DNA of 64,000 bases from Orbicella franksi (Eukaryota), in assembly GCA_964199315.1 (NCBI GenBank), contig OZ116706.1, forward strand, positions 15,562,001 to 15,626,000, in the 5' to 3' direction. The notes under the pieces were generated by a model, which saw nothing but the letters and a program-made list of their open reading frames with translations, ran no database searches and had not been told where the DNA came from. Made by a program: the position numbers and the translations under genes. Below are positions 7,386 through 51,478 of the stretch, piece by piece (the stretch's first letter is position 1; each line of letters opens with the position of its first letter).

Positions 7386-8303
7386 CAAGCGCAAAAGGAA
7401 GGCAGTCAGACAGCTGGCTTCAACGAAGTCTTACGCGGACAGCCAGCAGCAACATATTTTTATTCCTGTTCTATTTGTTTATTACTTTTTGAAAAAAATC
7501 AGCACTAATTCATAAAGGAAATACAAAAGAAATGAATAATCAATGAGTGTCTTTAAATTTGATAACGACACGGCTACATTTTGCAGTCGATTTTCTCCAG
7601 AAAAATAATAAACCCAAGGATTATTCTACAAATGAGTACATCTACCACAAACATTTTTGAAGCTGTTAAAAAAACTCCGCGGGCAGCCAGCAGCTATATA
7701 GTATCTGCGGCGGATATAGAGGTGGGTTTCGGAGGGTTGGCGTTTGATCGAACTACTAAAATTAAAAAAAAGAAATGAGACATTGTTAGACGTTAACTTG
7801 GTCTCAGAATGCCCGAAATCCCATTTCCGAGGATCTCTATTGTAAAAAATTTTTCGGGGAAGGATGCCCCCGGACTCCCCTACAGGGGACCGCCTTGGGA
7901 GGTCCGTGTCTTGAACCTCCTTCTCTAAAATCCTGTATCCGCCCCAGAGTTTTATCCCTGTTCTGTTTTGTTGATTACTTTATCACCGCTCTAAATACCA
8001 AAATGCTCTAGACTACATCGTGGAAAAGACAAACTTCCTTGCAAATGTTAGAAACAACTATCTTGGGGAAGTTCTGAATGATAGATTTTTGTCAGTTTAC
8101 TCGTCGCTAAACAAATAAAACCATTGTTTAATAACCTCTTGGTTGTTTAATGAAGAACATGAGCATTCATTAACTCTTGACATTGCCAATCACTGACGTG
8201 CAGATGGTCTTATAATTGCAGGCCTTCTTTATATATTCTAGCTTCGTAAAACAATTTTATATGACAAAAACTCGTTGCCTTAAAGGAAACTTGAGCCACT
8301 GTC

Positions 8304-9239
8304 ATGAAGAAATCGTCGTGTGAATTAGAACTGCCTAACTACCCCAAAGCCTCCAACGTCCAAGACCTTCATTCGACTTACATCGCTAACTGTGTCTTCA
8401 ACAGCTTTCTATCCTTTACCGCCATTATGTTGAACATTGTCACAATTCACGCCATACGAAAAACGTCCTCGTTGCCAAAGACTTTAAGAACAATGCTCCT
8501 GAGTCTTGCTGTTTCTGATCTTGGTGTTGGTTTATGTGTTCAGCCATTTTATACTTCACTTCTAATAAAGTGGTTACAGCACAACATTCCCAGCTGTATA
8601 ACCTACAAGGTTTTTGCCCTCTTTGCGACTTTGTTATCAGCGGCTTCATTCTTTGGTGTTGTCGCTGTAGGCGTAGACAGGTTCTTGGCGATCCATCTTC
8701 ATCTCAGATATCAGGAACTTGTAACTCACAAGCGTGTTCTTGCTGTGACGATCTTCACATGGGGTCTTAGTGCATTCGTTTCTCTAACATCGTTGTGGGT
8801 TTCGCTTGCTACTCGCGCTCTATTCCTTGGCATTACAGCTACTGTTGGTTTCCTTCTCACAATGGTGGTTTATATCAGGATTTATGTCGCCGTACGACGC
8901 CACAAGAATCACATGCAGGTCCTTCAAGTAAGACAAGTAACACAGACGGACGAAATGGCCAATTTTGCTGGCATCATTAAAACTGCAGTCGGTGTATTCT
9001 ATGTATATCTCGTGTTTTTGTTTTGTTATCTGCCATACTTTATCAGTTTGGCCGCCATGACAATCGTCGGCCCAAGTGACCCATTGAAGAGATTATTTTT
9101 TTTCTCCTTCACACTCATGTTTCTTAATTCATCTCTAAACCCTGTAATTTACTGCTGGAAGATGACCCATATTGGACACACTATCATGGAAATACTGCGG
9201 AACATAATCACTTGGCTCAGAAATCGTTTATCGCAGTAA
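8304..9239 (+). CDS. Intronless class A GPCR, paralog 3
   Basis: 311 aa; LAVSD, DRF, CYLP, NPVIY. Confidence 0.95.
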   Translation: MKKSSCELELPNYPKASNVQDLHSTYIANCVFNSFLSFTAIMLNIVTIHAIRKTSSLPKTLRTMLLSLAVSDLGVGLCVQPFYTSLLIKWLQHNIPSCITYKVFALFATLLSAASFFGVVAVGVDRFLAIHLHLRYQELVTHKRVLAVTIFTWGLSAFVSLTSLWVSLATRALFLGITATVGFLLTMVVYIRIYVAVRRHKNHMQVLQVRQVTQTDEMANFAGIIKTAVGVFYVYLVFLFCYLPYFISLAAMTIVGPSDPLKRLFFFSFTLMFLNSSLNPVIYCWKMTHIGHTIMEILRNIITWLRNRLSQ

Positions 9240-11784: not shown

Positions 11785-12714
11785 ATGAATACAATATGTG
11801 AAGACTCGCTGCAGTATTTCCCCTCAAACCTGGAAATTGAGGACCTCCGTTCTACCTACATCGCTAACTGCGTCTTCAACAATTTTCTATGCTTTACCAC
11901 CATCTTGCTAAACATTGCAACAATGCACGCGATACGGAAAACGTCTTCGTTGCCAGCGACCTTAAAAACTTTGCTCCTCAGTCTCGCTGTTTCGGATGTT
12001 GGTGTGGGTTTACTAGTTCAGCCATTCTACACTTCACTTCTGGTCAACTGGTTACAGCACAACTCCCGCTGTAGCAACAAAGTGACGTTCCATAACATTT
12101 TGTGCTTGTTTTCTGTCGCTTCGTTCTCTGGTGTTGTCGCTGTGAGCGTAGACAGGTTCTTGGCAATTCATCTTCATCTCAGATACCAGGAACATGTGAC
12201 TCACAAGCGTGTTGTTGCTCTGGTAATCTCAATATGGCTGCTCAGTCTGTTTATTTCTTTGACCCCGATGTGGCTTCCATCCGAAATTTTCAATCCCGTT
12301 ATCGTTATTCTTGCAGTTGTTGGTCTCGTTTTTATTGCAATGGTCTACATCAGGATCTATTTAGCCGTACGTCACCACAACAGAGAAATCCACACTCTCC
12401 AAGTACAACACGGAACACAGACAGGCGAAAAGGCACATTTTGCTATCCTCGTTAAATCTGCTTTTGGTACATTTTATGTATACCTTTTGTTATTGATTTG
12501 TTATTTACCTCACTTAATCTGCATGGCTGTCATTGAAGTCTACGGTACGAGTATTGCTTTGAAAAAATTTTTTCTTCTCTCAATGACTCTTGTGTTTCTC
12601 AATTCAGTTTTGAACCCTGTAATTTACTGCTGGAAGATGAGACACATTCGGCGCGTTATCATCGACATAGGGCGAAACATGATTACTTGGCTCAGAAATC
12701 GCTCATCACACTAA
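11785..12714 (+). CDS. Intronless class A GPCR, divergent paralog 4
   Basis: 309 aa; LAVSD, DRF, CYLP, NPVIY; clearly more diverged from paralogs 1-3. Confidence 0.95.
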   Translation: MNTICEDSLQYFPSNLEIEDLRSTYIANCVFNNFLCFTTILLNIATMHAIRKTSSLPATLKTLLLSLAVSDVGVGLLVQPFYTSLLVNWLQHNSRCSNKVTFHNILCLFSVASFSGVVAVSVDRFLAIHLHLRYQEHVTHKRVVALVISIWLLSLFISLTPMWLPSEIFNPVIVILAVVGLVFIAMVYIRIYLAVRHHNREIHTLQVQHGTQTGEKAHFAILVKSAFGTFYVYLLLLICYLPHLICMAVIEVYGTSIALKKFFLLSMTLVFLNSVLNPVIYCWKMRHIRRVIIDIGRNMITWLRNRSSH

Positions 12715-28270: not shown

Positions 28271-31012
28271 CTACCCTAGTCGATATAAACAGACGTAGTA
28301 AGATGCAGATAATTAGTGTCTTTTGTTAGAAAAAAATTTCAACAAAATGCCCTATTTCATTAGCAGCAGTCCCCCTATTTTACTTATTCCTGTGCTTACG
28401 CGCGAGTGAAAACCAGCCTTTAGAAATTCGTGGTCCCAGCTCTCCGGTCTCTCGCGACCGTCCAGTCAGCGGCCGCCTGGACACGCAAAACAGGTGTCAG
28501 CTATTTCCGTCACAAATGAGTGGTGAAGATTTCGTCCATTTCGATCCATTAGCGTAATGTCTTTAAAACTCTAATTTACAAGCTAGGTTTTAAGTGTATT
28601 ATTACTTTTGCCTGGGGTATTACGTACAAAGCCAATTTAGTGCTTACCTAACTGGTCTTTTTTTCATTTCGTGACATTGTTCACGTGGAGCGAGGGTGTT
28701 TTCACAATGAGTTAAGTTTTGTCTTGTCTATTTCCATATTAAAGGAATACATTAGGGGCAATTACGGAGGCGCAAACGTTTTCTTCGTTATCAATTTTTT
28801 GAAACTGCAATAATCAACCCACGATCAAACTAAACGTACATCATCTGAGAATCATCATGGAATTTCAAATTGTCCTTTCATCTCGGGTAAGGGATAAAGC
28901 CATTACATTTATTGACATACGAGGGAGTATTGCCTGCATGGACTGAGCGCTAATGAAGAGAAAATGCAAATGACAGGGCTTAGTAGAACAATTGACAAAT
29001 AATAGACATAATAAAATTTTTAATTACTTGAGGTTGCCCGACCTACAAATTTACAAAGCACGGCGTGTATATCGATATTCATAAAAACATCTTACACGAA
29101 AACCAGATTGGCGAAAAAAAAAGCCAGCACTTTATAAGTTAATGTAGTTATAATGAGAAAATGAATCCAATCTGGAGCCGAAGGCTTGCCCTAAGTCGTC
29201 TAAAATACCCTCTCATAATGTCCGCAGTTTGGAACGAAAATACTTGAAATTAAAGCATTTAACACCGATCCGATTAGATGAAGGACAGCAATTTGGGAAC
29301 AAAGATTTGGTATTCGAATCAATTTTGACAGTTTATATTTTGTACAAAAATTCTAAGCGTAAATTTTTACTGTAAGGAAGTGCCGTCTCCAAATATGTTT
29401 AATTTCCAATGAGGCTAAATCTATTGAAAGGTTTGACGTACTTAATATTACTTACTTAGTATACTGACCATTTCTCAGTGAGAAAGCCAACAGTGCAAAT
29501 ATTGTTCAATATTTCTCAACAATTTTTTAAGGGTCTCTACTTTTCAAGACTTTGAAAATTGGCATTTCAGATGAATGACGCAACTTGAACTCAGAAGTTT
29601 GATCGGAGTTAACTGCATAAAGGTCTTGCTGGAGTAACAAATATAATTTGAGATTTCTAGTATCTATACGTAAGGCAGTATTAATCCGTTTTAAGCGTCC
29701 TATCTCAAAATCCGGCAAATGAATGGCTCATAGACGTCTAAGGCTAAATAACATTGAAATTCCGTGGTTGGTTTCCTTGCCTTCCGGCATTATCCTTTTC
29801 AATGTAGTTTTTCTTGCTTTCGGGGTACATTACGGACGAAGGAATTTATATTTTAGCTGGAAATTCAAAAAAATGTCGACTAAAACACCGTGCAAAGTAT
29901 AGTTGTAAACGAAAAACAATAATTAATAAATCATACAAAGGCAATATCAAGGTAGCAAGTCCATAAATTCTAATGATACATTTTCAGCAAAGCATTTAAT
30001 TTTTAGGTGGAAGTATTTAAAAATAGAAAATTGATTGATGATCTTTTAACTATATATTTTTTTCTTTCACCTACTCATACAATCAATATCGTTTTATTTA
30101 TATTAGTCAAGAAGTACAGGTCCGAATTATCATGGACTCTGACTTTATATTTTTAGTGTCAGAAAAGGCCAAGAAAGGGAAAATAGGGCGATTTATGCTC
30201 AAAACGCCAGCAGACCAGAAAGCTCTTTACCGTAGATAATCAAAACACAGCGATTGTGAGAATGATATAAACTTTTTTGTGATACGTGCAGGCGTCTGTT
30301 ATGAACTGAATTTTCTTTGCCGTTTAGCGTGAAACAGAAGACAGTAAACAGACGTATATACCAGTTCGACACACCGCGAATGATTTGTTTACATTTAGCT
30401 AGTCTGAAAGGTAATACAATGCGTATATAGAAATGTGCTCGAATTGTGTGTCGTTTTGTCCGGAGAAAACTCGTTTTTGAAGCCTATTTTACAGGGCTAC
30501 ATACTCATTTGTAACTTAATAAATATTTGTGACTCTATCGTCAATTCTGAAATATATCGGCGAGGGTCATTGCTATATTGAATGCCCTTTCGTCTCCACG
30601 AACCTTTAATCAACAAATTCAGTGTTCAAAACTGTTTATGTAAATTTTGGCTTTTTTCTAAATAGCCTGGCAGGTGAAAATTTCGTTCAATACGGAATCA
30701 CTGTAGACTGACAGGCTAAAACCAACAAATTTATTTTCCGTTGCAATTTATGTACAAGATACCTCACTCAGGCGCGATATGACCAAATATTTAGCTGGAT
30801 TGAAGAAAACTCAGTTTACACAATTCACGTTGAGAAAATGGCTGAGTAGAAAAGCCCTCCAACCATATATTTAACAAAAATTTGAAGCAAACAATTATTT
30901 CATTCAAACAAACTATTTATTTTGATTGAAACAGCGTCAAGATTTAAAACATCGATTGCTATTGCAAGTCATTTAAATTGATTCTCTCAGCGAGATTCAC
31001 ACAAAAATTATT

Positions 31013-34000
31013 CTATGAAGAATTTGAAATGTTAGATCTTACTTCGGACGTTTCTGGGACACTTTTCAGTGATCTTTGAGACTGTAAGCGCTTTTTAGAC
31101 GATAGAGGTTGAGTGTTTATTTTATCAGTTTTAGGAGGTAAAGTTGGAACTTGTAAACTTATTTCCTCCCCAGAACCGACCTCAAGTTCCCCACTCGTGT
31201 TTTCACTGATTCTCTTTTGTTCAAGGTCTTTCATTAGTGTCAGTATTTCTTCCAGACTGTAAAATCCCTTCTCTGAGTCGCTTCTCGAAAGAACAGGCGT
31301 TCGTACACGAATTTCACCCTCTCCGGCCATAATTTCGCTCGCGCTTGAAAGCCTCCGCCTTAGTGGAGATTCGTCAGTGTTGAGAAGCGAAAGGAACTCA
31401 CCAAGATCATACAGAGACATGCTGCCTCCCGAATCTTGACGCGGGGAAAGTTGAGGTCGCGTTGCGCCGGCCGTGATATTTTCATTCGCGGCAGCTGAAT
31501 CTGAATTTCGCGAGTTTGTGTAAGAATTTGATTCAGGTTCGCTTTCGCTAGGTTTAGACGAGGCAGATGACACGCTGGACAATCTTCTTCTCAAGGGGGA
31601 TTCGTCATCGTTTAAAATGTTTAAAAACTCGCGGAGGTCGTATACTGAGCCTCTCTTAGGCGAAGGTCCACTCGGGTCAGTCCCTATGCCAGGCACTGGA
31701 AGGAACACATCTTCGAAGACTTCACTGTCGATGCTTCTGTTGCTCTCGTCCGTGACGTAAATACTAACACCGCTTTGCGAGACGCCGGAAAACTTTCGTC
31801 TGAGCACGGCGGATGAGAGCTGTTGTTGATTTGGCTGGCTCTGTTGAATGGCATGCAACGACAAGAATTCTTTCAGGTCATACACAGACATTTGACGATT
31901 ACTGGTATTTGCCTCCAAGTATTTCGCGCTTGCTGAAGTTGCAGAATCGCTAGCGGTCGAGTAGCCACTGCTGGCGGTCATCGGAAGCGAGGGCGAAGCG
32001 AGGGTGTCCTTCTCGTTGGAACCTGCGTTACCAGAAGCGAGGTGGCTTTTCTCATCAGCTTCTCGCTGCATTTTAGACAGAATTTCTTGCAAACTGTAGG
32101 TGGACTCGCGTTTTCTCTCGTGTTCTTGTTGCAAAACATTCAGAATTTCTCTCAGATCGTACACTGATTGCCTGGGCATGTTTAAATGATTGTTCATGGC
32201 TCCCGACGACTGCGCGAGATTTGCGCTGGCTTTCGTTTGTTCCTCATCTGAGGCCGGTGTAACTCGTACGAGCGGAGGTACAGCAGAGGTCATAGACAAG
32301 AATTCTGCTAGGTCATAAACAGACAGGCTTCTGTTCTCTTTTTTCTGTCTTCCCAGCTCACTTTCTTCATTTTCTACTCCACTAGAATCATTTCCACGCA
32401 AAGCTGGAGTACTCTGCCCTGAATCAGAGCGGGAACTCCCCCCGGAGCGCGACAGAGATAAGAACTCCATCAGATCGTAGGTAGACGATCGTCTTCCTTC
32501 TTCTGAATGCGTAGAAACAGAAAGCGAGTCATTTGAACCCGGGCTGCCAGGGGATAACACGATTCTCGGGGAAGTCGCTCTACTGGAGTTTTCGCTCGCC
32601 GAGCTTGATTCCGATTCAGCAACGCTACCCAGTGATAAAAACTCCATTAGATCATACACTGAACCTTTTCTTTCGTTGCGTGTATTTTCTCGTTCTTGAC
32701 CAGGAAGAAGAAGATGTTGTGAAGCGCTCGTCTTCTTTTTCGTCTGCCCCGTACTGGCATTCGAAGCTTCGGCGGCCGCTAGCATCAAGAACTCCCTTAA
32801 ATCGTAAACAGACGCATTTGAAGCCTTATCGTTCGCGCTGGAAGTCGCACTTGTATTTCGAGGCGTCGAAGCCGTTGACGAGGTCTGCCGCTTCAAATTC
32901 TCTTCTTGAAGCAAAGTTAAAATTTGTTGCAAATCATACAGAGAGTGTCTTTTTTCTCCTTGTTTTGGCGGATGTAAAGTATCGACGTGTCCATCTGCGC
33001 CGGGCACATGGTCTGGCAGCCTTTCCCTTTCATTGTGCACGCAGCTTTTTCCTTCAATTTTAAGCGCTTCGCTTTCCTGGATTAAATTTTGCTTTTTCGG
33101 TGTCAGCGAAGGCCTTCTTCGGTCAGTAAACTGCATCGCGTCCGTTATATCGTTTAATGACTTTCGGCCTTTTTGCTTGATCTCTTTATTTACAGATTCA
33201 CTGCAAACAGGCGAGCTAGGGGTGCTTCGAGGCTGGTTAGCAGTATCATTTGCCCACCTGTGATTGTTGCGGCGCCGTTGCTTTTCGTGTTCTTTCTGTT
33301 TTTCCTCGGTCTTTGAAGTGTCTTGAAGATGAGATAACGTTGAGCCGTCGATATCGTGAACTGAAAGTCGTGGTTGTGATAAGCGGGAACGGCTTGTCGA
33401 TCTTAGCCCCGCGGTTAGCGATGACAAGGTGCTTTCTGGACGACGTCGCAAATTGATCTTTCTATTAGATAATTCAGGTGAAGATTTTGCTAACCTGTGT
33501 GATCTCGTTAATTTACCCAAAGTTTGAAATGTGCTGCTGCCTCTACGGCGCATCACGGACTCTTTGTAAGGAGGCATTAAATCTTCATCATCGGTGGACT
33601 TGTCTAACGGCGTGTTAGACCCCAAACGAAACCGATTCTTCTGCTTTCCATGCGACGCTTCTTCGCCGTCAAAAAAGCGTGCTTCGTCTTCGTTCGTTTC
33701 CTTAACAGCCAGGTCCTTAATTAATTTCGTTTCATCTTCACGCTTCGCGGTATATTTTTTGAATTTGGTTGAGTTTCTGTGCCTTAAACTCTCCATTTTG
33801 TGCGAGATTTTCGAAGGTGTTATTAAAGTTGACAGATCGGATTCACTATCAGCTTCTGTTGCAGTTTGGGTTTCGCTTCGTAACCTTGACGCACTTGAAG
33901 CCGAACGAAGCGAGTCCAAACGAACTATCGGAGGCAGCCTCACCAGGCCGTGTTTATCACGAACAATGCCTGATCCTCTCTTCGAATTTTCGCCATCGAG

Positions 34001-34066
34001 TTCGACTGTTCCTTCTTTGCTTATTGGTGGAAGTTTCAAATATGAATCTCCAAACGCGAACGCCAT
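31013..34066 (-). CDS. 1017-aa Ser/Arg-rich disordered protein with 11 SxYDLxEFL helical repeats; function unknown
   Basis: Uninterrupted 3054-nt ORF from the first ATG (34066); recurring protein-level motif with synonymous variation between copies; no recognisable globular domain. Confidence 0.9.
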   Translation of the reverse strand: MAFAFGDSYLKLPPISKEGTVELDGENSKRGSGIVRDKHGLVRLPPIVRLDSLRSASSASRLRSETQTATEADSESDLSTLITPSKISHKMESLRHRNSTKFKKYTAKREDETKLIKDLAVKETNEDEARFFDGEEASHGKQKNRFRLGSNTPLDKSTDDEDLMPPYKESVMRRRGSSTFQTLGKLTRSHRLAKSSPELSNRKINLRRRPESTLSSLTAGLRSTSRSRLSQPRLSVHDIDGSTLSHLQDTSKTEEKQKEHEKQRRRNNHRWANDTANQPRSTPSSPVCSESVNKEIKQKGRKSLNDITDAMQFTDRRRPSLTPKKQNLIQESEALKIEGKSCVHNERERLPDHVPGADGHVDTLHPPKQGEKRHSLYDLQQILTLLQEENLKRQTSSTASTPRNTSATSSANDKASNASVYDLREFLMLAAAEASNASTGQTKKKTSASQHLLLPGQERENTRNERKGSVYDLMEFLSLGSVAESESSSASENSSRATSPRIVLSPGSPGSNDSLSVSTHSEEGRRSSTYDLMEFLSLSRSGGSSRSDSGQSTPALRGNDSSGVENEESELGRQKKENRSLSVYDLAEFLSMTSAVPPLVRVTPASDEEQTKASANLAQSSGAMNNHLNMPRQSVYDLREILNVLQQEHERKRESTYSLQEILSKMQREADEKSHLASGNAGSNEKDTLASPSLPMTASSGYSTASDSATSASAKYLEANTSNRQMSVYDLKEFLSLHAIQQSQPNQQQLSSAVLRRKFSGVSQSGVSIYVTDESNRSIDSEVFEDVFLPVPGIGTDPSGPSPKRGSVYDLREFLNILNDDESPLRRRLSSVSSASSKPSESEPESNSYTNSRNSDSAAANENITAGATRPQLSPRQDSGGSMSLYDLGEFLSLLNTDESPLRRRLSSASEIMAGEGEIRVRTPVLSRSDSEKGFYSLEEILTLMKDLEQKRISENTSGELEVGSGEEISLQVPTLPPKTDKINTQPLSSKKRLQSQRSLKSVPETSEVRSNISNSS

Positions 34067-36945
34067 GAAGAGTGTTCCAAAGCGCAATTTAAACCGCGAG
34101 AAAAAGGTTAAGTTTGTAAACAGCGTTTCAGTCGCTAAACCAGCGACACTATTGAAGTTGGCCTGGTAGAAAAGTCGTTGTATGGTTTCTACAACTCAAA
34201 CATCGCGAAGAAATAGCCGGCCATCTCCAGTTTTAATCCGTAAATGATGTTTTGAGACCGGAAAGAGCGCAATTGACGGAAAAAGTATTAAATTTGACGT
34301 CGGCAAAACAACGGATAGTCGCACTGCATAAATTAGCCCGTGAGCCCTATTTTCGGTGTGAATGTTTTTACTTGGCCAATTGCAGCCGGATGTAAATGAA
34401 ACTACCAATGAGAAAAGACCATTGACAACAGCCGCTTACTAAAAGCAGTCTTCTTTAACCATTAATGTCCCTTTTATGTCCGAAAGAAGGAAACAATATT
34501 TAAAGCGAATCGTGACAGGGAACGAGTAGGTTTTAATAATATGAGCTAAAAGCTGTGAACGAAAACATAAATGAAAACTCAACCCTATTAAGTTACCAGA
34601 GGCCCAATTGTGTCTCAACTACAATGTTAACTTTCATTTTGGGTGAATTTTAATTATATCCTTTTCGTTAAGAAGACATATGCTAAAGCGTGTCATATGT
34701 GTTAGTCTTACAGTCTTAATTCTGTAAATAAGGCCCCGGCCTCGCATCTGCAGGTGTAAACCGACTCAAATTATGCAGCTTGACAAAGACCTGTCGCTTC
34801 TTCTCGCTTTTAACTTGTTTGTATTTTTATCGACGTGAGCTTTCTTCCAATTGCATTGTGACACGCGCGCTTTTTTGCACTCGATAAAGTTCTCAATTTA
34901 TTTGTTAAAGTACCCATTGGATCAAGTTTTCTGTCTCATTAATCCTTTCACGAAAGTTGCAAATCTTCACCTTTAAATCATGTCCAAAACAAGAGAAAAA
35001 GTTCCCTTGGACTAATTGCAATTAACATCTTTGCTGAAATGAAAGAACCTTTTATAATTTAAATCATCTTAAGCGGTTCTCTTTTCCGATCTCTGTTCAC
35101 TGCAGGATTTAGATTTTCACGGAACTTCTAGTCATCCCAATGAAAAGGAATATTACGCAGACTAAAGACTTGTTTGTTTTGCAGCCGCCTGTAATGGTGT
35201 TATTTCGTAAACACGATTCCATGCTAAAAGGAAATTAGCAATTTTCACAGGAAAAAACTGCAACTTCACGCCGATTAGAAATTTACATAACCGTGGGCGT
35301 TCTGAGTCTCGATTCATGGACTTACTGCACGGCGAAGAAGTATACCAGCCGGTCTCGATATCAGATCTTTTAGCGCGTTTTATAGCTATGTGACAACTCA
35401 TGCGTCTTCGTCACCGGACGGTTTCCAGAGTATCTCACAATTATTAAAGCGTATTACAAGAGTATCTTCCTTGCACAGTCAATTTTTCAGTGCGTTTCTT
35501 CCTTTAACATTTTAGTAGCTATTTTTAACAAGGGGGCGAGATTAATGACTCGGGCAAAGCTTGCTTCAGGCACCCTAAATTTTGTCCGTCGAAAACTTAC
35601 TTTCGTTTGGGAAGATTTAACTAAGTATAACTGAACTGCAAACTTTGTGCAAATTTTTGATTTTTTAATTCGTGTTACAAAAAGTTAAAACGCATAATAG
35701 CGATGTTTTGGATAGTGTTTCCTTTAGCTTGTAAATATTTTTTTCCCTTCAGGCATATTGTAAGATAACATCATAATGGTAATTGGCGAAAATGTTTGTA
35801 TAAAAATAGCAGCTTGACAGGACAACGAGCTCTAGGTTGCGATATAAATGTTTACTTTTTCTCTACTGCGCCTAAATTGTTTTTATCTCTCTTGAGTACA
35901 ATTTAGTCGTCTCAAGTTCTTTTGAAAATAATAACTGCGCATTTAAGTGACTCGATATTTATCACCCCAGCTCCAAACCAATCTTTGATTGGCGTGCTAT
36001 AAAAGACATATTTTATTTACATAGCTTTTACATGAAGTTAGTCGGAGACGTTTGATTGCGACCTTGACAGCTGGGTAATTTTTTTCTTTTAGCTCGTTCT
36101 GTTTTTGGGGAAACTTTTATCCGGGAGGTGAGAATGTTTGAAAAATAACTTGTGTGTGTGTGGAAAAAGTCGCTTGGCGGACCGAAAAAGCTTTCAGTTC
36201 TGACATGTGCTGCAGCTCAGTTTTTTCTTTTCGCAGGATTGAAAATCTGAATTTTTTTTCAATCTTCTGACACCATCACACTTATAAAGGAATTAGTTGT
36301 CTCCAAACTGACATGGCGTTCTTTCCCATGTTTCTAATTTTGGCACCTATTTCACATCCCTGATGGCTCTTTCAACGTTTTTGCTCAGCAGAGATGCTCC
36401 AGAATTGATGTTGTCTTTTCAGATCAAGGAATAAGAAATATTACCGAGATGCGTGATACGTGATAAGGGCAAAAATTAATGTGTGACATGTGAAAAGCAA
36501 CTTAAAGAGATAAGTGATTCGGGAATTTACGAAAGAAAAGCATTAATTATTAAAAGTAGGCAAAAGTATACGTGACACGTGAACTGTGTTAAAATCCGCG
36601 CGTGAAACGTGATCACAATCCACCGAAGGAAAAAACATGGCGGCTGCACATTTTACCACAATGCACTGCGAGCCTAACACAGCCTATAAGGCACAAAGAA
36701 AGCCTTTTTTTTTTAACAATATTCGTCCCTGTTCCAAGGACATTAAGTTGCCTAAGTTTGAAGATTTTATAACGTTTCTGTATGTTTTTATGAACGTTGT
36801 TAAGAGTTTCGTGCGTTAAGAACTATGGGTAAATGTACCAGTCGCCATCTATTTTCCCACGGAGGATTAATCTCCCCTTTGTTGTGTAGCGTGCATATTT
36901 TTATGGACTACGCACGCGCACCGAAGAGAAAAGTCAATCGAGTGC

Positions 36946-41024: not shown

Positions 41025-44000
41025 GGCCTTAAATGGTTTAATTGACTGGGATTTTAATTTTTGTAGTTTTAAAGATATTCATGGGTATAACACGAGAAGT
41101 AAAGACAACATTTGTAAGCCTCCATCCCGTCGCTCCTGGGGACAAAAGCGTCTTATTTACAATGCCGTTAATGAATGGAACACTTTACCCGATGAAGTTA
41201 GGAACAGTATCAGTATTTTTAATTTTAAAAGTCGAATTAGGGGTATTTCTTAATTTTTAATTATCTTTTTTTTTTTTTTTTTTTACTGTTTTCTATATTT
41301 CTATTAGTACAATGGTTAAATGTTATTATTTTTAATCTACTATTTCTTTAGCTTTTGCAATTTTATTTTTGCAGGGCCCCACTGAAAACCACATGTATGT
41401 GAAGTGGGCTCCCTGTTGAAAGATCTTTATGATTATTATTATTTTGACCTTACTTTGGCTATCGAGGGGACTGATTATCAGTACTGATCAAACAAGCATT
41501 TACATAAGCATTTTTCCTAATGCTTTAACTTCTAAAAAGGCTCAAAATCATGGGATAAGTATATATTTTTTGACAAACACGATCATAGCCTTGTGTCATG
41601 CACCTCCATAACCCTGAAATTCAAAATGCTCTGGATTCCAACAAAGCATGCTATTGAGCTGTAAAATTGTAAGCAGATATAAATATACTGCCTCTTGTGC
41701 CTGATGAGGACAAAAACTTTGGTGGCTCTTTCGTTTTTGATTTTAGAAAGTGATGACGTCACATGAAAACAATCTATTAAATGCACATAATCTTTCTTAT
41801 GAAGGTTAGGTTTATTCCCTACATTGTATTTCCCTTTTGTCTTTTTTGTTAATAAGAGCATTCTATATTTTCTCAGATGTAATGACGGATCTGTACAACT
41901 ATGTCAACCCTAAGAATGGGAAACATTCTCCACTGATCTCTAAGGAGACACATGAGATCATCATGAATAATGCTGATGTAAGTGAAAAAAACTCAAATTC
42001 TTCTTAAGACTTTGAAAATTCTATTAATTGTGATCTAATGTAGTTTCAGATTTTAATTTTGTTATTTGGTAAGTGTACAGAAAAGTGAACACAAAGACTG
42101 CTGATGCTATATAGATGCTTTATTTGAGATAATATAGCAATTCTTTCAGCACATTGGTGACATTGCTAAACAAAATCAATGATTACTTCCCTGTTTTAAT
42201 TAGTAAACTTGGTCCGAGTTTCTAAAAAAATTACATTGCTCCCTTTTTCAGAGACTCAACTCTGCTATCATTTATGACCGTGACTATCACTACAATTACT
42301 TTGGGGTGAAGGTATGTCAAACTTTTTTTGTCCATCAAAACTGTCTTTTCCACTCTTACGTTTGTATAAATAAAAGGTGTTCCTAATATTTTGCAGACCT
42401 TAATGAGATCTTACCTGCTAAAGATCAACGGCAAAGTGGCGGAAAGGCCAGCACACATGTTGATGCGAGTTTCAGTTGGAATCCACAAGGATGACATTGA
42501 TGCTGCCATTGAAACTTATAATTTGATGTCTGAGAAGTGGTTCACACATGCCTCGCCGACACTTTTCAATTCTGGCACTTGTAAACCACAGCTGTCAAGC
42601 TGTTTCTTGCTGACAATGTCAGATGACAGCATTGATGGCATTTATGAAACGCTGATGACTTGTGCTAGAATCTCAAAATCAGCTGGTGGAATTGGTATTA
42701 ATGTGCATAATATCAGAGCTGCTGGGAGCTACATAGCAGGGGTAAGGCCACGGTTTTATTTTATTTTGTATCAGTTATATAATTTTTAAATTTGTATGCA
42801 AAGTAGTTAAAAAGGAGGTAAAAACCAGGCTAATTATTTTTGAACATCATATTGCTGTTTGTTGGGTGCAGCTACCTTGAGGAGGTAATCTCACAAACAT
42901 CATTTGATTTTTATTTATTCATTTATTTATTAAATATTTGCACAGAAGAAAGAAATTTATTAATGTAAGTTGAACTAAATAATTTTTGCCATGGCTCTGC
43001 ATGGGCATAAGAAAAAAAAAGACAGAGAAAGTAACGTGGAAAAAGAAGTTTCAAACTACCGTGTTGAACAGGAAAACATTAAATAGCTTATTACAGCAGG
43101 TATCAAAAATGTCCGGTACAATTAAAACTAAAAGTTTATCACTTTTTTGATAAAACTAGACAAAATTTTTGTCTATTTCCATTTCAACCAGACCAATGGA
43201 GTCTCAAACGGTCTGGTACCGATGTTGCGGGTTTACAATGCGACTGCAAGGTATGTTGACCAAGGAGGCAACAAGAGACCAGGAGCCTTTGCTATATACT
43301 TGGAACCCTGGCACAGCGATATCTTTGATTTCTTGGACTTAAGGAAGAACACAGGAAAAGAAGAACAGGTATAGGAAGAGATCTATTTTGCTTTTCACTG
43401 CCTAATGGTATCCATGCAGAGGGACATTACTAAAGCTTTTTAAAAACATGGCTGTACAATGAAAGTACTTGTAGGTGATGGTGACTTCAAGACGGGCCTC
43501 CTTTGACTGTTGTGGTTTGGTTATATAGAAACGTCAAGATACCAGTTCCAATTAGTAATAATTAGCTACTGGCATCTTATGGCAGCCTTGAAGGCAGAAG
43601 CCCCCCACCCAAGTCAAGATTTTACTAATTTATTGTGATATTCTTTTCTGTCTAGCGTGCTCGTGACTTGTTCTATGCTTTGTGGATTCCTGACCTCTTT
43701 ATGAGGCGTGTGGAGAGTGATGGGATGTGGTCACTTATGTGTCCTAATGAGTGCCCTGGTCTACAGGACTGCTGGGGAGAAGCTTTTGACAAGCTTTATG
43801 AAAGGTATTTTACTAAATCATTATTAGTTGATGCTCAGTCACTGGTTTATCATTGACATGCAATGCCTGATGGAAAGGATGTCCAGTGGTGGTGATTTGA
43901 TAACACTGATTTTGATGCTCTGAAGGACTGCGAAGGTTTCCAGGGTGTGTGCTGCTCATGACTTTAACATATAACAGTATTTATACTGTACAGGTTGTCA

Positions 44001-47000
44001 CGTGTCTTTGAAAGTTTGAGTTGGGAGATCAATTTTGTCATTGAAAAGCCTTAGGAAACTCCTTGATTAGTTGATTTGACTGTCTGAATTCTGGTTACAT
44101 GTTTGGAATAAGTGGAGCTAGTGGGAATGCTTGTTCATTTTGTACCATGGGGACAATTTTTCATATTGCTCTTTAACCTAACACAGCTACGAGGAGCAAG
44201 GAAAATTCCGCCGACAAATCAAAGCTCAAAAGCTGTGGTTTGCGATCTTGGAAGCACAGACAGAGACTGGCACACCATACATGTTATACAAAGATGCATG
44301 CAACAGAAAGAGTAACCAACAGGTGAGTTGATGAGGTATGCTATCATTGCTGCCATTGCCATTTCTGCTCCATCTCCTTCCCATCACCAGGTTGGAATGT
44401 GCTGTCTGGGAGAAGTACAGGTTCCTGCTGGCAAAGTAACTTTTCATTGTCACTTGCCCGATAGGCAAGGACCCAGACAAGTTGTCTTCTAACTAAATAA
44501 CAAAAGTAAGCTAGACTTGCCCAGGCAAGCAAAATTTAAGAGCTGCTTGTCAAAGGGCAAGCTAGAATTCAAGTTTTTTTCAAGCCCTGCCCATCATCAT
44601 CTCTTCCTCTCTTCAAGGTAGACTCCTTTCCATTGTGTGGGCAATGTGCTCTGCTCCCGGGTATAACAACCTGATAGTCTGTCTAAGAAACACTTGACTG
44701 TGCAATGTGAGTGTTGGGGTGGGGATGTTAAAAGCTGCCCTGCCTCCTCTGAGCTTGATCTTGCTGTGCTATTGAGCTGCTCACAAGCCACTGTAGAAGA
44801 ACAGAATCTTCTCATAACATAATCTTCTGATACAAGCAAACTGATCTCCTGTATACTAAGTAGTTTATCATATCTTCTCTTCATTTCCTTGGAATGATCG
44901 TTTTCTTAAAAAAAATTGTACAAACAAGTAAATTTATTTACTCTAACACTAAAATGTTTACTTCACTATTAGAATGTTGGAACCATCAAATGCAGCAATC
45001 TTTGCACAGAAATTGTGGAGTACAGCAGTCCAGATGAAGTATGTTTCCTTAATAGCATATTGTTACTTATTTTAAGTTAAAAATGGCAGTCAATTTTTTT
45101 GTTTTCTTTTGTGCTCTCTCAATCTTTTTTATCTGAAAGATAGTCTGCAATTCTGAACCCCAGAAACTCCCAAGTAGCGATTTTGCCTGCCTGGTTTGAC
45201 CATCTAGAGAAACATTTTCCCTACAACAAGGTTCAGTTCAAAATGTTTTCCCTGTCTTTGAAGACCAGTTGCCTTCCTTGTGAAACATTGATGAAACTTC
45301 TGATTGCCATCAGAAGCTGTTAGTGGCATACATGTAAAATGCTTTTCTCTTTCTCATACAGGTTGCTGTCTGTAACTTGGCCTCACTTGCACTCAACAAA
45401 TTTGTTATGACTGATGAAAGGCCAGTGCAGTTTAATTTCCAAAAACTCTTTGAGGTTACCCAGGTAAATACGTGCTAAAATTATAGAAAGTGAAAAAGAA
45501 AAATTGACTTTGTATATTACATGTACCTTAGTTATAGCTGCAGACTGTGATTTCTTCAGATTAAGTTGTCTTATTTGTTCTGTCTTTTTTTGACAGGTGG
45601 TAACACGCAACTTAAACAAAATAATTGATATCAACTACTATCCAGTGAAGGAGGTGTGTTTGAAAAAATTGATTTTTGTATATGGTACTCTGCTTATAGT
45701 AGAAGCTTACAAGTAATGTGCAATTCAGTGGATTATCATTGACGGCAACTTGTAATTAGTTTATTTGTTTACTTATTACCTTCCCTACATTAATCTTATT
45801 TTTGTTTCATCAGGCTGAAAGATCAAACAAGAGACACAGGCCTATCGGCATTGGAGTACAGGTAAAATCACTTGTGGAAAATTAAATATAGGAATACCTT
45901 GTGCTAATTTGACCAACAAATATATCTTTAAACATGGTTTGTTTTGACAAGGTATTAACCCCAGCCTATTTACCATATTCAAACCATTTACCAACCCTTA
46001 AGACATGTTACACAGGGAAATTGTTCTTGCAGTTTGTAAGGTAAAATGTCTCTGGAAAAGTGGTCCAGACGGCCAGCTAAGTTAATGTTACCGTATACCT
46101 TCAGGGGTGTCTCACGTCCAAGCGATGTAGCGCGTCCGGTTTAAGCTGTAGATACCTAAACCCCTATATCAAATTAAAGCTTATAGAGCTGGCTATCAAA
46201 CCATACCAAAAATTTTGAAATAAAATGAAGTGCCGATTTTTTCACGGCCACTAAATGCGAGCGTCCTAATCACCTTTTGGAAGCTACAAGTCAAAGCGAA
46301 TTTTGTTTTTTGCCAATTTATTTTTTTCCTCGGTTTCAGGACAAAAAGCGCTAAAAAAGCGTGTCTGCGTTTTGCCATATTCAATTGCAGTAAAAAGTTA
46401 CAGAACATTTTCAAAATAGGATTTAAAAAATGTGAAGTGACCGTACAAAAATTGCTCTCGGAGAAAAAATATTTCGAAATAAACAATTCGCAGACACATT
46501 TTTGGTTTTTATATGTTAATCTAGCTACTGTCCAAATTTGAGGGCAATCAAACAAATCCCCTTTGAGTTGTAACTCTTTAAAGTGTCTGGTTCAAGCGAA
46601 AAAATTTATTTGAGAAAACAGTGCTAAGAAAAATCTCTTGCTTCGCAAACAAACTCCGCCCACAAACGCCTTCAACTGGGTTCTCAGATCACTGAGCCAA
46701 TCAGCGCTTGGAAAATTTACTACCATTAACTCGCGGTGAAATTTACGCGTTAATCTCGAAAAAACCCTTGTGTTTCGCAATGCGCTCAAGGCGGAGAGAT
46801 AATTTTTCTGTAGCTCGGTTTTTCTTGAAGCTGGTCTGGCAAAATGGGGAAGACGAAAAAGGATACGAATGTTAGAGTAGCTGGGCGATGAGAACAAACT
46901 GAACAAAAGAAAGCGAAAGAATTTTGTTTTCAGAAATTAGAGATTACTCTTCGACCATTACTTTGAACCAAAAATCCAAATTTGAAGAAAATTGCCGATC

Positions 47001-50000
47001 TGAAGGTATACTGTAACCTTAATCTCGGTTTCTGTAGCCTAAACGACTGGGAGTATTTCCAACCCCCCACCCCCAACCCCTCTCCCAGGTTGAATGGGAT
47101 GTCAGTCCATCACATGGTTACCCCCTAGTGGTGAATTCATACACCTGGGTAGAGAGAAATATCGTGCGAGTGATGCGTCTTGACCATGAACTCAGTTACC
47201 TCAGCTGGGGCTTGAACCCAGACTGCTTGGTCCCCCGAGTCCATTGCACTACCCATTGGGCAAGTTGACAAGTTGTAACAGCACCTTAAAAAAACCGTGT
47301 GTTTATTGCAATTTCAGGGAATGGCTGATGCCTTCATTCTTATGAGATATCCATTTGAAAGTGATGAGGCCAAAGAATTGAACAAAAAAATATTTGAGAC
47401 AATCTACTATGGAGCACTAACAGTAAGTTATGTTTGTATTTAATTTTAATCTCAACATCAGTGACTCAGCTCATCCTATCTTGTGGTCTTGGTAACTTCA
47501 CATTCTTCAGGGCAACCAAATTTGATGCTTTTGTTCTTCTGACAATTTCCCTCTGCATCATGCAATGAGCATTACACAGGGCAGTGTGACACTTACTAGT
47601 CCTACATATTAAGCTTTCCTCTCTCTGTTAACTTCCTAGTCTGGTGTTTCTATGTTTGTGCCATGGTTCTCTACTGTCCTCCAGGCCTCAATGTTTTGTT
47701 CAAAAAGATACCTTCTGGATCTTGATCTTGTCTGCTTAGTAGAGGAGGCAGGGGGTGGGGGTGGGGGGCGGGGGGTTGCAACGGGAGGAAAACAAAAAGG
47801 CCCTGTTGATGTTTCTCTGGAGTAACTTAATTAACTCAGAGACTTTGCACCATTTCCAATGAGGGTTTGACTGACACACCCTATTAGTCCACTGTGCCCC
47901 AACAAAATTGGCAGAGCAAGTTGTAACAGCACCTTTAAACAGTATGTTTATCACAATTTCAGGGAATGGCTGATGCCTTCATTCTTATGAGATATCCATT
48001 TGAAAGTGACAAAGCCAAAGAACTGAACTAAAATAAATTGAGACAATCCTCTATGGAGCATTAACAGTAACCTGTCCATTTCAAGTCTCGTTACCTACCC
48101 TTCTACTTTAGGACAACAAACAAATTCACCAACTCTTGATCTTGTGTGCTGTGGTTTAATAAATATTATTTGTCTCTCACTAGGCATCTTGCCAGTTGGC
48201 CAAAGAGAAAGGAGTTTATGAAACTTATGAAGGATCACCTGCAAGCCAAGGGGTAAATATTGATTTCACCTTAGGACTGCTTATTTTAATACCGTCCTAG
48301 AATAGTCGTCAAAGGGGTTAGCAATATTCACTAGTTCAGACAGTGATATGGTTACTTTTATTTTGTGCCCAACAGTGTTTACTTGTCGGGGACATGATAT
48401 AGCAAGTTTTTAAAAATAAATGTGGATGTGTTCTCTAGTATTTTAATAATTCTATATTAAATTTTGTATCATTTCTACTGGAACATAGAAGTCAGTATGT
48501 GACAGTAGAATTCTGATTTTTCAAACCAAAAATTATTTGTTGTTTTTTGCTTCCTTGGCAAAATGTTGGGTGAAATTTGCACTTGACTTTTTTGAACCTA
48601 CATTTGTTAATTCAAAAACTCAGGATTACACAGGTTTTAGCCCCTTTACTATTGTGCCATTGGTGGTGAAAAGGAACCTTTTAGCTAAGAAAGTGAATTA
48701 ATATTGACATTATATTTCACCATGTTTATTAATAGTGTCTGTTATCTAACAGAAACTTCAGTATGATCTCTGGGGAGTGACTCCTACAGATCTGTGGGAC
48801 TGGGCAGCACTGAAGGCAGATATAAAAAAGTAAGAACAACTCTTGTATTAATGTGGGAGTAGAGTGTATAATTATATACTGTGGAAGAGAGGAGGCTAAG
48901 ACTAACTGGCAGCAACATGACTATGATATGCTTAACCCTTTAAATCCCAGGAGTGATTAAAATCTGACTAATTTCTCACTAAAATAGCAATGGACAATTC
49001 CAGAAAGTATCCATACCTAATGTCAGGGAGGGCTTTTTGGGATTCCAAGGGCAAGGGGGGTTTTTTGAACTGCTAATCCAAAGGCATGGGGGGGATTTCG
49101 TTTGATTGGAATTCCAAAGGTAAGGCGGGGGGTGGGGGGTGGGGGGTGGGGGTGCATTTCAGTTCTAGGAGGCCAGAGGGGACAGACAAGAGACACACAG
49201 ACATGCCTCGTATAAGGGGGGAAAAGGCTTTTCTATTACAATGAAACCATTCTGCGTTATCAAAAATTTAGTTTGGCGAACGGCTTGCCTGGGTCCTTGC
49301 CCCTGGGGCAAGTAAGGAGAGAAAGTTACTTGCCTGAAGGGAAAATCTACTTGTCCCGGACAACCGGACGGGGGTTTTTTTGAGCCATGATTCTGAACAT
49401 AAAGGTATAACTCAAATTTTAATTGAAACACATTGTTTTGATTTTGAATTCAGTGCAGTGTTACAAATGTGGGCAAATCGTTTTTTGGGGTTTGGTGTTT
49501 GAATCTGGCGCTGTTAATATTACTGTAGTGGAGACAAATATAATTTTTTATGTTGGTTTTCTTGTTTGTTTTAAGGTATGGATTGAGGAACAGTTTATTG
49601 TTGGCACCAATGCCAACAGCTTCCACTGCACAGATTCTTGGCAATAACGAATCTTTTGAGCCGTACACAAGCAACATTTACTCAAGACGTGTTCTTTCAG
49701 GGGAATTTCAGGTATTAATAATAATTTTGTGTTTGAACTGTACACAAAGGTTGACTTATAACCATCAAAATAATACTAATCGACCCCTTGTGAATGACCC
49801 CTGCTATACATGTATGTGTGGACATGGAAACCTGATGACAGACATATAGTCTGTCCTGGAAATTTCACAAAAAAATACCTTTGACAAAAATATCCAAATT
49901 AGTAATGCATCCACCTCTTATCAATTCCCTGGTGAAGTTTGTGTTGTCATGGAAAAACAAACAAATTAATAATAAGTGTTGATAAAATAACCAAAATGTA

Positions 50001-51478
50001 TGTATGTAAGTATGTATGTATGTTGTTTATTACACTGTAACCAAAGGCATGAACTGCTTTTTCATTTTGTAGATTGTAAATCACCATCTGCTAAAAGACT
50101 TGACAGAGAGAGGTTTATGGAATGAAACATTAAAAAACAAACTTGTAGCTGCTAATGGCTCCATTCAGGTACCTTTACATTGTGCTAATATGTATGTTTT
50201 CAACCAAAACGGGGGCTCTTTGGTGTGTTAGCTGTTGCCATTGCATTTGGTTGTAAGAAAGTTGTCGAAAAATCAGGGAAAATTCAGAGTTAATCTTCAT
50301 GTTCAGCGGTCAACCACAATTATAATTTTGCAGGTTCTGACAAAAGTGTTAATGAAATAATACCATATCTTAACATGGACTGCACTAGCCATTTCTTCCA
50401 CTCAAACATACTTCTTTCCTTTGCATGCCACTGTCAGGTTTCTTTGTATTATCATAATACCACATTACTCAACCTGTATTTCCCTCTTGAATCCTTCAGC
50501 ACATTGACGAGATCCCTGATGATCTTAAACCATTGTACAAGACAGTTTGGGAAATTTCCCAGAGGACTCTCATAGATATGGCAGCTGACAGAGGAGCATT
50601 CATTGATCAAAGTCAGTCATTCAATGTGTTCTTTGCTGAACCTAACTATGGCAAGCTGACAAGCATGCACTTCTATGGCTGGAAAAAGGTAATTCAATGC
50701 TTGTTAATGCTGGTTGCCTAAAATAGATACAAAGTTGCATCAATATCTTGCCAGATACTAAAAGTCTGACTTTAGATAAAGTGGCCCACACCTCTGGAGC
50801 TTGTTGCATGGTGACAGGGACTATTGCTTCTCTGCAATGCAGGGTTTCATTAACGTTCTCAGCAGAAGGACAACTGGTTTTCTCAGGCCAACAAAACCTT
50901 TTTGAACTGAACTTGTTTATAAGAAAACCTTCACCTCATCTAAGTCCTTGTGTCAGAGTGGTGTATAAGGCCTCAAAGATGGTCAATGGTGATGGTCAAC
51001 CTAGGTGGGCAAAACCATCCCCATAGCCAGTCAATTTGGCTGGTGCTCAGCCCTTGATGAAATCCCTGACAAATGCTACTTCATCATGGCATAACCCCCA
51101 TCTCTCTCACAGTTTGCTGGTTACCACCATTGTTTTTACACTCCTGGTCAAAGAGAAGCAGTGTGAGAGTGAAATGTCTTTCCCTAGCCGAGAGCACATT
51201 GATTCTCATTGCTGTTCGTATGCAAACAGTGCAACGACTCTAGAAATTATTCACCTTCGTTGAGTCTACAGTGTAATTCAAAGAGTTCTATGAATTAAAT
51301 CTTCTAGGGCCTCAAGACAGGAATGTACTACCTACGTACTCGTCCTGCCGCAAATGCAATTCAATTTACAGTGGACCAACAATCTCTCAAAAAGACAACC
51401 AAGACTGCAGAGCAGAAAGAAGAAGCCATTGCTTGCTCTCTTAAAAATCCCGAGGCTTGTGTAAGCTGTAGTGGATAG
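38840..51478 (+). CDS. RRM1: Ribonucleoside-diphosphate reductase large subunit (class Ia R1), 20 exons, 803 aa
   Basis: Exons 38840-38903, 38999-39084, 40090-40267, 41877-41977, 42252-42311, 42397-42741, 43192-43368, 43656-43804, 44187-44322, 44973-45038, 45362-45463, 45597-45653, 45814-45861, 47318-47422, 48184-48252, 48753-48829, 49576-49711, 50073-50168, 50500-50688, 51308-51478 (2412 nt, all phases consistent). Motifs [31 protein letters not shown] and C-terminal CxxC. Confidence 0.98.
40971..41022. repeat. (TAA)n microsatellite, about 17 units
   Basis: Read directly. Confidence 0.95.
41023..41443 (+). mobile_element. 5'-truncated CR1/L2-like LINE 3' end in RRM1 intron 3
   Basis: Reads [40 protein letters not shown] (stop 41251-53), typical of the ORF2 C-terminus, followed by a 3' UTR and an (ATT)n tail. 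Confidence 0.8.
46038..47260 (-). mobile_element. CORE-type SINE split by a TTAA element
   Basis: Tail piece 46038-46085 and body 47023-47260 join into a homolog of 25050-25338. Confidence 0.7.
46086..47018. mobile_element. 933-bp TTAA-flanked non-autonomous DNA transposon (Kolobok/piggyBac-type target)
   Basis: TIRs gttaccgtataccttcag / ctgaaggtatactgtaac; TTAA at 46082-85 and 47019-22. Confidence 0.85.
47963..48066 (+). pseudogene. Duplicated, disabled copy of RRM1 exon 14
   Basis: Near-identical to 47318-47422 including the acceptor; in-frame TAA at 48029, 1 nt shorter, donor GTAACC instead of GTAAGT. Confidence 0.9.

Follow-up and report, generated by a model that had tools for sequence, protein, structure and literature searches.

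An intronless coral gene encodes eleven copies of a conserved basic-serine-YDLxE[F/I]L motif in a predicted disordered protein

A 64,000-nucleotide stretch of contig OZ116706.1 from the stony coral Orbicella franksi, hereafter called the window and used as the reference for all coordinates unless another contig is named, carries on its minus strand a gene whose protein product repeats one short sequence, [RK][RK]-x-S-[VLTI]-Y-D-L-x-E-[FI]-L, eleven times. What might such an array do? An earlier note on this DNA had quoted eleven strings of this kind from positions 31240 to 32950 and read them as a scaffold that binds many copies of one partner under cAMP control. All eleven strings are present in a single minus-strand frame, at 31235-32953. 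The reading that we consider reasonably probable is that the protein is a disordered scaffold whose array of short linear motifs docks a partner multivalently, with the serine serving both as helix N-cap and as the switch of a basophilic kinase.

The one long minus-strand open reading frame (ORF), which holds the array, spans 31013-34087. The coding sequence itself is a single exon of 1,017 codons for amino acids at 31013-34066, with the ATG at 34064-34066 and the stop codon at 31013-31015; its start (MAFAFGDS...) and length are identical to those of the closest database proteins (P0001 and P0002, 99% identity). A poly(A) RNA-seq contig of 3,612 nucleotides from the same organism (run X1) corresponds to an unspliced minus-strand transcript, colinear with the genome at 30599-34210. 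Its word depth is 80.9, compared to 0-12 in the flanks, and an ATTAAA signal is located about 10 nucleotides upstream of its 3' end. A contig from a second poly(A) run (X5) covers 30762-34517, and no splice joints were reported in the poly(A) contigs across the gene. This gene is expressed and has no introns. Introns are likewise absent from P0048 (LOC116604645), its Nematostella orthologue, which adjoins the gene of the ribonucleotide reductase large subunit. Exons of the latter are found in the window at 42249-50690 on the plus strand, with 71-81% DNA identity to the Nematostella gene. Thus, the ribonucleotide reductase gene is located near the target in both species and microsynteny is conserved between sea anemone and stony coral, with a relative orientation of the two genes that differs between the coral and Nematostella.

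The array fills the C-terminal 60% of the protein, and its copies are separated by fast-evolving spacers. As the earlier note had described, these linkers are rich in serine, which makes up 16.9% of the whole protein, and vary in length, the tyrosine-to-tyrosine distance between motifs ranging from 21 to 80 residues. Matches to the pattern Y[DS]L..[FI]L number 11, whereas shuffling the protein 20,000 times gave a mean of 0.0025 and never more than 1, and the analytic expectation is 0.0019 copies. Among the copies, the first invariant leucine is encoded by all six leucine codons, the tyrosine by five TAT and six TAC, and the glutamate by GAG and GAA five times each. Since the codons vary in this way, the copies are old and maintained at the protein level rather than recent DNA duplicates.

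With copy boundaries set at five residues before the tyrosine and eight residues after it, the eleven copies are arranged as follows, all on the minus strand and given from the N-terminal side; helices refer to the AlphaFold2 (AF2) model described below. Copy 1 (KRHSLYDLQQILTL, Tyr377) is encoded at 32912-32953 and is predicted to form a helix at residues 379-387, and copy 2 (SNASVYDLREFLML, Tyr421) at 32780-32821, with a predicted helix at 423-434. Copy 3 (RKGSVYDLMEFLSL, Tyr471; 32630-32671) has invariant R466, S469, Y471, E475, F476 and L477 in 26 orthologues, and in copy 4 (RRSSTYDLMEFLSL, Tyr530; 32453-32494) R525, R526, S528 and Y530 are invariant in the same alignment. Copy 5 (RSLSVYDLAEFLSM, Tyr584; 32291-32332) is duplicated in complex-clade corals, where an extra copy is present in P0024, P0025, P0030, P0031 and P0034. 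Copies 6 (PRQSVYDLREILNV, Tyr636; 32135-32176) and 7 (KRESTYSLQEILSK, Tyr657; 32072-32113) share one merged helix in the model; copy 7 is the least conserved of all and is degenerate or absent in many relatives. Copy 8 (RQMSVYDLKEFLSL, Tyr729; 31856-31897) has a predicted helix at 728-742, and copy 9 (KRGSVYDLREFLNI, Tyr809; 31616-31657) one at 811-819, followed by the sequence ESPLRRRLSS. In copy 10 (GSMSLYDLGEFLSL, Tyr886; 31385-31426) DSGG replaces the basic residues, and D878, S879, S884, L888, E890, F891 and L892 are invariant. Copy 11 (SEKGFYSLEEILTL, Tyr936; 31235-31276), with a predicted helix at 938-957, has no serine in Orbicella franksi (KGFYSLEEIL) and is a full Ser-bearing motif in sea anemones. 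A basic residue three or two positions before the serine (S-3 or S-2) is present in 8 of the 11 copies; copies 2 and 10 are devoid of them.

A word-indexed search of 5.8 billion proteins retrieved 57 relatives, among them proteins of the stony corals Oculina, Desmophyllum, Montipora and Porites and of the sea anemones Nematostella and Actinia. Orthologues of this long family were seen only in Hexacorallia. The relatives contain 7-11 motif copies each, and all are named hypothetical or uncharacterized or bear automatic low-complexity names. In an alignment of 26 sequences the copies correspond to one another by position, apart from gains and losses in particular lineages. Among these orthologues the 121 motif residues score 0.79 for majority-residue conservation and the 480 linker residues of the region 0.45, which together with the codon usage bears out the proposal of the earlier note that the motif is kept while its codons vary. 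These sequence comparisons support selection on the motif array. An artefact or a non-functional low-complexity region can be excluded, because the array is conserved between stony corals and sea anemones. Two outcomes that the earlier note had named as fatal to its own reading, a lack of conservation in related species and a lack of transcription, are thus ruled out by the hexacoral orthologues and the poly(A) RNA-seq contigs.

A sequence logo was derived from 152 copies in 16 long-family proteins, with positions counted from the tyrosine. Tyrosine at position 0 and leucine at +6 are present in 100% of the copies, followed by leucine at +2 (99%), serine at -2 (93%), glutamate at +4 (88%) and aspartate at +1 (84%). 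Position +5 is occupied by phenylalanine (78%) or isoleucine (22%), position -5 by arginine (49%) or lysine (26%) and position -4 by arginine (43%) or lysine (13%). Position -1 is V, L, T or I, position +3 is variable, +7 is serine or threonine and +8 is L, M, I or V; leucine at +9 is found in only 38% of the copies. Phenylalanine does not replace the tyrosine in any of 245 copies of both families, the long one and a shorter sister family, although the search pattern permitted it, implying that the hydroxyl group matters. R-R-x-S followed by a hydrophobic residue is the consensus of PKA-type kinases. A serine or threonine is present in 144 of the 152 copies; of these, 113 have arginine or lysine at S-3 and 78 at both S-3 and S-2, while the residue after the serine is V, L, I, T or A. 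At the level of sequence the copies hence fit a PKA-type substrate (R/K at -3/-2, Ser/Thr at 0 and a hydrophobic residue at +1). The PKA consensus proposed in the earlier note is accordingly real as a basophilic context and partial in its occurrence.

As the earlier note had suggested, a profile of the repeat (32 columns, from 48 repeat instances) was built. A HMMER search of 1.84 billion representative proteins with this profile returned no more than 27 at E <= 0.001, the credible matches being the long family and the shorter sister family, and no protein outside these two families was recovered. Members of the short family have 500-600 residues and 5-6 copies of YD[LIV]xEFLxLP, with phenylalanine at +5 in 100% of cases; their genes are single-exon and transcribed. 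Profile-profile comparison with hhalign gave a homology probability of 99% for the long and the short family and aligned copy 8 to the fifth of six short-family copies. Between the last two short-family repeats lies a 'KPSIIDVT' / 'SIHVTDE' element. Two of the six short-family repeat positions have neither the serine nor the basic residues yet keep YD[LV]xEFL. This observation points toward the helix core as the constant unit, with the basic-Ser element as an accessory on most copies.

All short-family sequences stem from unannotated assemblies (GCA_949826985.1 and ENA metagenome assemblies), and the family is absent from the named proteomes that hold the long family. This absence suggests that the short family comes from another clade and is not a paralogue within Hexacorallia. 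Contigs from different species, at least four in number, have a TRIM45-like gene directly upstream of the short-family gene (L003 5301-7232, L007 2748-4496 and the contigs of P0098 and P0100). The TRIM45-like ORFs carry a Filamin domain, and longer relatives have RING and B-box domains as well. No neighbor genes are common to the short-family contigs and the window. DNA likeness between them is confined to tRNA-like sequence and one short repeat-like stretch of 69 nucleotides, 78% identical between window 7815-7883 and L003 1676-1742 (...TTTTCGGGG.AG.ATGCCCCCGGAC.CCCCTAC...), which may belong to a widespread repeat element.

Searches of other resources returned nothing that would place the protein in a recognized family, in line with the earlier note. 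No significant Pfam domain was detected in the protein, in 26 long-family or in 10 short-family members. A sub-threshold Pfam match to SH3-B_UBE2O on 'SVYDLKEF' in 5 of the 26 long-family members and none of the short family was rejected as chance. The profile matched only two PDB entries, the SAM helix 'DLREFLTLTES' of ANKS3 and a coat protein, both by chance. A feature search of the ESM Atlas gave unrelated disordered proteins (Treacle, APC, KRAP) at a best score of 0.82, which is not evidence of kinship. The literature search returned nothing relevant on the motif, its formulae or the locus tags of the family. An unrelated protein of 1,099 residues from an ENA contig (P0071) has nine repeats at a spacing of about 97-98 residues, each with FRNPEKVKYDLEQFLAQTDR; its 'YDLxxFL' likeness is probably due to chance, because the motif sits there inside a regular, domain-sized repeat.

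To what extent the motifs are structured was addressed by AF2 modeling of the full-length protein with the 26-sequence alignment. The mean predicted local distance difference test score (pLDDT) was 40.7 and the predicted template modeling score (pTM) 0.26, with 855 of the 1,017 residues below a pLDDT of 50. Secondary structure is limited to short helices on the motifs, those of copies 6 and 7 being fused into a single stretch of 39 residues (pLDDT about 80), and to two small helices on the PLRRRLS elements that directly follow motifs 9 and 10. The best-conserved 168 residues, containing copies 9-11, were also modeled alone and gave isolated helices (pTM 0.17). A folded helical bundle of motifs is therefore unsupported by AF2, either in full length or in the 168-residue fragment. 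According to these predictions, the protein is an intrinsically disordered chain with local helix-forming elements and not a repeat domain.

How could such a chain work? We propose that each motif would fold into an amphipathic helix of two to three turns upon docking into a groove of a folded partner, so that the protein could bind up to about eleven partner copies, or an oligomeric partner with high avidity. Multivalency, which the earlier note had put forward, is supported by the motif anatomy and by its conservation. The sequence S-x-x-[DE] is a helix capping box, and phosphoserine at the N-terminus of a helix stabilizes helices. The serine at -2 and the aspartate three residues after it would form such an S-x-x-D box, with serine as N-cap and aspartate at N3 (position +1 of the logo). 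The same serine, with arginine or lysine usually at -3 and often at -2, is a plausible target of a basophilic kinase of the PKA, PKG or CaMK type, and its phosphorylation may alter helix propensity and binding. Stepwise multisite phosphorylation could then grade or sharpen the response, the count of phosphorylated sites setting the number or the avidity of bound partners. Judged by the sequence, gating by PKA and cAMP is plausible. The capping box alone would explain part of the conservation of serine and aspartate. Basic residues at a helix N-terminus are unfavorable for the helix dipole, and their retention in about 75% of the copies is better explained by kinase recognition. Six of the seven core residues are constrained, on all sides of the helix, which suggests either that the partner wraps the helix in a groove or pore or that the aspartate and glutamate have roles within the helix itself.

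Several observations weigh against this proposal. Conservation of six of seven core residues exceeds what one helix face needs, and the AF2 helices on the motifs are of only moderate confidence (pLDDT 55-82). The conservation of serine and aspartate could be purely structural, as capping without any phospho-switch, and about one copy in four lacks the basic residues. Phosphoproteomics supplements for Aiptasia and Oculina contain no peptide of the family, a weak negative given the different species and low coverage. What the data show is the array, its conservation, its transcription and, by prediction, a disordered chain with local helices; partner binding and phosphorylation, and with them which kinase acts and in which sense the switch works, are inferred.

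Other explanations of the array have to be weighed against a docking scaffold. The helices might act as stickers that bind one another across the spacers and so form oligomers or a condensate, with phosphorylation of the adjacent serines setting the valence. We regard this as unlikely: the repetition of one hydrophobic helix along long, flexible spacers rich in serine, a moderate helical hydrophobic moment (0.31-0.46) and the want of a known external partner would suit self-association, but AF2 packs no helices in either model, and the near-absolute Y (never F), D and E over the 245 copies argue for a stereospecific site instead of generic stickiness. It is less probable still that the motifs enter the catalytic cleft of a PKA-like kinase and make the protein a substrate buffer or a PKI-like decoy. 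The protein does hold additional RRRLSS sites, and basic pair, x, S, hydrophobic residue, aromatic residue, Asp and hydrophobic residue follow each other in the order of PKI (RRNAIHDIL versus KRGSVYDLR), a likeness drawn in the earlier note. However, a PKI-type pseudosubstrate has alanine at P0, where the coral copies have serine in 93% of cases, which marks them as substrates. In addition, the YDLxEFL core is kept in the absence of basic residues in copies 2, 10 and 11 and at two short-family positions, and the strongest conservation (E, F/I and L, at +6 to +8 from the serine) lies beyond the usual reach of a kinase cleft. For phosphotyrosine docking, in which the invariant tyrosine would be modified and pY-D-L read by SH2-type domains, the strict exclusion of phenylalanine is the main argument, yet position +3, the usual site of SH2 selectivity, is variable, the motif is predicted to be helical whereas SH2 ligands bind in an extended form, and the conserved basic-Ser context would be left unexplained. 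We consider such a role very improbable.

A divergent member of a known motif class, be it eh1, eIF4E-binding, KIX-type, LC3-interacting region or nuclear export signal, is about as improbable as a kinase-directed array. Several patterns do bear a likeness: the hydrophobic register 0, 2, 5, 6 is that of eh1 (FxIxxIL), Y-x4-hydrophobic-hydrophobic and 'YD..EFL' are reminiscent of eIF4G and 4E-BP, LxEFL fits the KIX-type pattern and EFLSL fits [WFY]xx[LIV]. The residue frequencies speak against the eIF4E-binding and eh1 motifs. In the eIF4E-binding motif Y-x-x-x-x-L-hydrophobic, leucine would be expected at +5, where the long family has F or I and the short family F, never L. For eh1 the register matches, but position 0 is Y in 100% of the copies and never Phe, +2 is Leu in 99% and not Ile or Val, and +5 is F in 78%. 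The LC3-interacting pattern [WFY]-x-x-[LIV] is matched by F-L-S-L in most copies, with isoleucine at the aromatic position in 22% of them and a segment that is predicted to be helical. A KID-like design, with R/K-R/K-x-S ahead of L-x-E-F-L and a predicted helix, is present as an analogy of design only; homology to pKID was rejected, as there is no Pfam pKID match and no KID protein in the profile search. The paxillin-type LD motif L-D-x-L-L-x-x-L, to which the earlier note had likened the helix, differs from the consensus Y-D-L-x-E-[FI]-L-x-[LM], and no LIM domain is present; what remains is a mechanistic analogy. None of the known classes requires a conserved S, D and E, no PDB chain was matched beyond chance, and the profile stayed within the two families. 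Further candidates were also rejected: the B56 motif LxxIxE (position 1 is often Thr or Ala, and Y, F and L are conserved beyond the core), FFAT (the upstream tract is basic, not acidic, with Leu at the small-residue position) and ITIM (position +3 is variable), while nuclear export signal, GoLoco, WH2 and PAM2 were set aside on the logo.

In comparison to these alternatives, a multivalent docking scaffold remains our preferred reading. A bolder version of it, which we advance tentatively and hold to be possible, is that YDLxE[F/I]L with its basic-Ser head is an undescribed motif class, and that the protein is an anthozoan-specific, high-valency phospho-switch scaffold through which PKA-type activity would be turned, gradually or in an all-or-none manner, into the recruitment or the release of as many as eleven copies of a conserved cellular partner. 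If true, this would be a lineage-specific signaling hub with no bilaterian counterpart.

Outside of the array, several other elements of the protein stand out, all encoded on the minus strand. The N-terminal element HGLVRLPPIVR (33920-33952), conserved in the 26-sequence alignment, has a core, VRLPP[IL], in common with the short sister family, and the translation shows KLPPI at 34022-34036. RLAKSSPEL (33470-33496) is a further conserved element of the alignment. The sequence ESPLRRRLSS occurs twice, just after motif 9 (31574-31603; small AF2 helix at 824-830) and just after motif 10 (31343-31372; AF2 helix at 901-907), and is predicted from its sequence to be a second basophilic-kinase-type site. 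The near-invariant columns DSGGSMS (31415-31435), seen in translation and alignment, are fused to copy 10, with the final serine as the N-cap Ser of that copy. DSGGSMS fits the beta-TrCP phosphodegron pattern, DSG-x(2,3)-S, which offers a lead only.

The window contains other ORFs in addition to the motif-array gene. On the minus strand, a 521-residue ORF at 62176-63741 encodes a disordered-looking product without a Pfam domain and with at least seven Y-x-N motifs of the Grb2-SH2 docking type (PGYQNIAG, DYVNVKG, SYANVAG, SYQNIG, SYVNVMS, LYVNSP and DYVNGD); these would suit an adaptor phosphorylated on tyrosine, which the product may be. In composition (GC 0.48, AT skew -0.2) the ORF agrees with the motif-array gene. 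Four tandem single-exon ORFs of about 310 residues each, on the plus strand at 1068-2018, 4918-5853, 8304-9239 and 11785-12714, encode rhodopsin-family G-protein-coupled receptors (Pfam 7tm_1, E 1e-23 to 5e-29). A 686-residue ORF at 54456-56516 on the plus strand has no Pfam match, and the region that holds it is strongly skewed in GC (0.24) and AT (0.14).

The array is exceptionally clean: over the 152 logo copies the tyrosine and the final leucine are invariant and four more residues are conserved at 84-99%. The motif is a ready peptide bait for a partner in the tractable Nematostella, and the protein offers a natural system in which to study the tuning of valency by multisite phosphorylation beside a helix N-cap. 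Should the partner prove to be a conserved protein, the motif may reveal a binding groove not yet known to take ligands. Coral cell biology, in which few genes of this kind have been characterized, also gains a putative lineage-restricted signaling component.

Among known systems, the closest by design are the paxillin LD motifs, the PEX5 array and the CREB KID, and the closest by hydrophobic register is eh1; we regard these as analogies, not memberships. Paxillin has five LDxLLxxL helices in its disordered N-terminal half, which bind four-helix bundles such as the FAT domain of FAK and GIT. They are short, acidic and amphipathic, occur several times along a disordered scaffold and each dock on their own, as is predicted of the coral helices. 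From the leucine after the aspartate, the coral motif likewise runs L-x-x-hydrophobic-L-x-x-L, and nearby phosphoserine can modulate binding in paxillin. In contrast, Tyr, Asp, Glu and Phe/Ile are near-invariant in the coral motif, which has another register and eleven copies versus five, and the coral protein has neither LIM domains nor sequence homology to paxillin. The N-terminal domain of PEX5 is the best precedent for the proposed multivalent stoichiometry: it is a long disordered region with seven to eight WxxxF/Y helices that bind PEX14, each able to take up one copy of the same small folded domain. Its motif, however, is a di-aromatic pentapeptide without an adjacent kinase site; PEX5 also includes a folded TPR domain and occurs in all eukaryotes, whereas the coral family is confined to one lineage.

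A PKA site at the head of a binding helix has its precedent in the pKID of CREB, where the phosphoserine touches the partner directly. In helix alpha-B of the CREB/CREM/ATF1 KID (RRPpSYRKILNDL), which binds CBP KIX, a PKA-type R-R-x-S heads an amphipathic helix with a hydrophobic-x-x-hydrophobic-hydrophobic element that is disordered until bound, the classic case of phospho-gated folding upon binding; on the coral side this behavior is predicted. Unlike the coral array, KID is present as a single copy in a bZIP transcription factor, its spacing from the serine to the hydrophobic pair is off by about one helical turn, and no homology was found. The eh1 motif, bound by the WD40 pore of Groucho/TLE, has the identical hydrophobic register 0, 2, 5, 6 and forms a short helix when bound, but is usually present once per protein, in factors of the homeodomain, Fox or T-box type, whereas the coral motif has Tyr at 0, Leu at 2 and mostly Phe at 5. 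PKI (RRNAIHDIL) shares the order of basic pair, small residue, hydrophobic residue, ring residue, Asp and hydrophobic residue. Apart from its alanine at P0, PKI has its affinity helix upstream, whereas the coral helix lies downstream, and coral copies without the basic pair keep the helix core. The motif and its family are undescribed, and they are built on a known principle: disordered scaffolds with arrays of short linear motifs, such as paxillin, PEX5, APC and KNL1, build multivalent, switchable assemblies.

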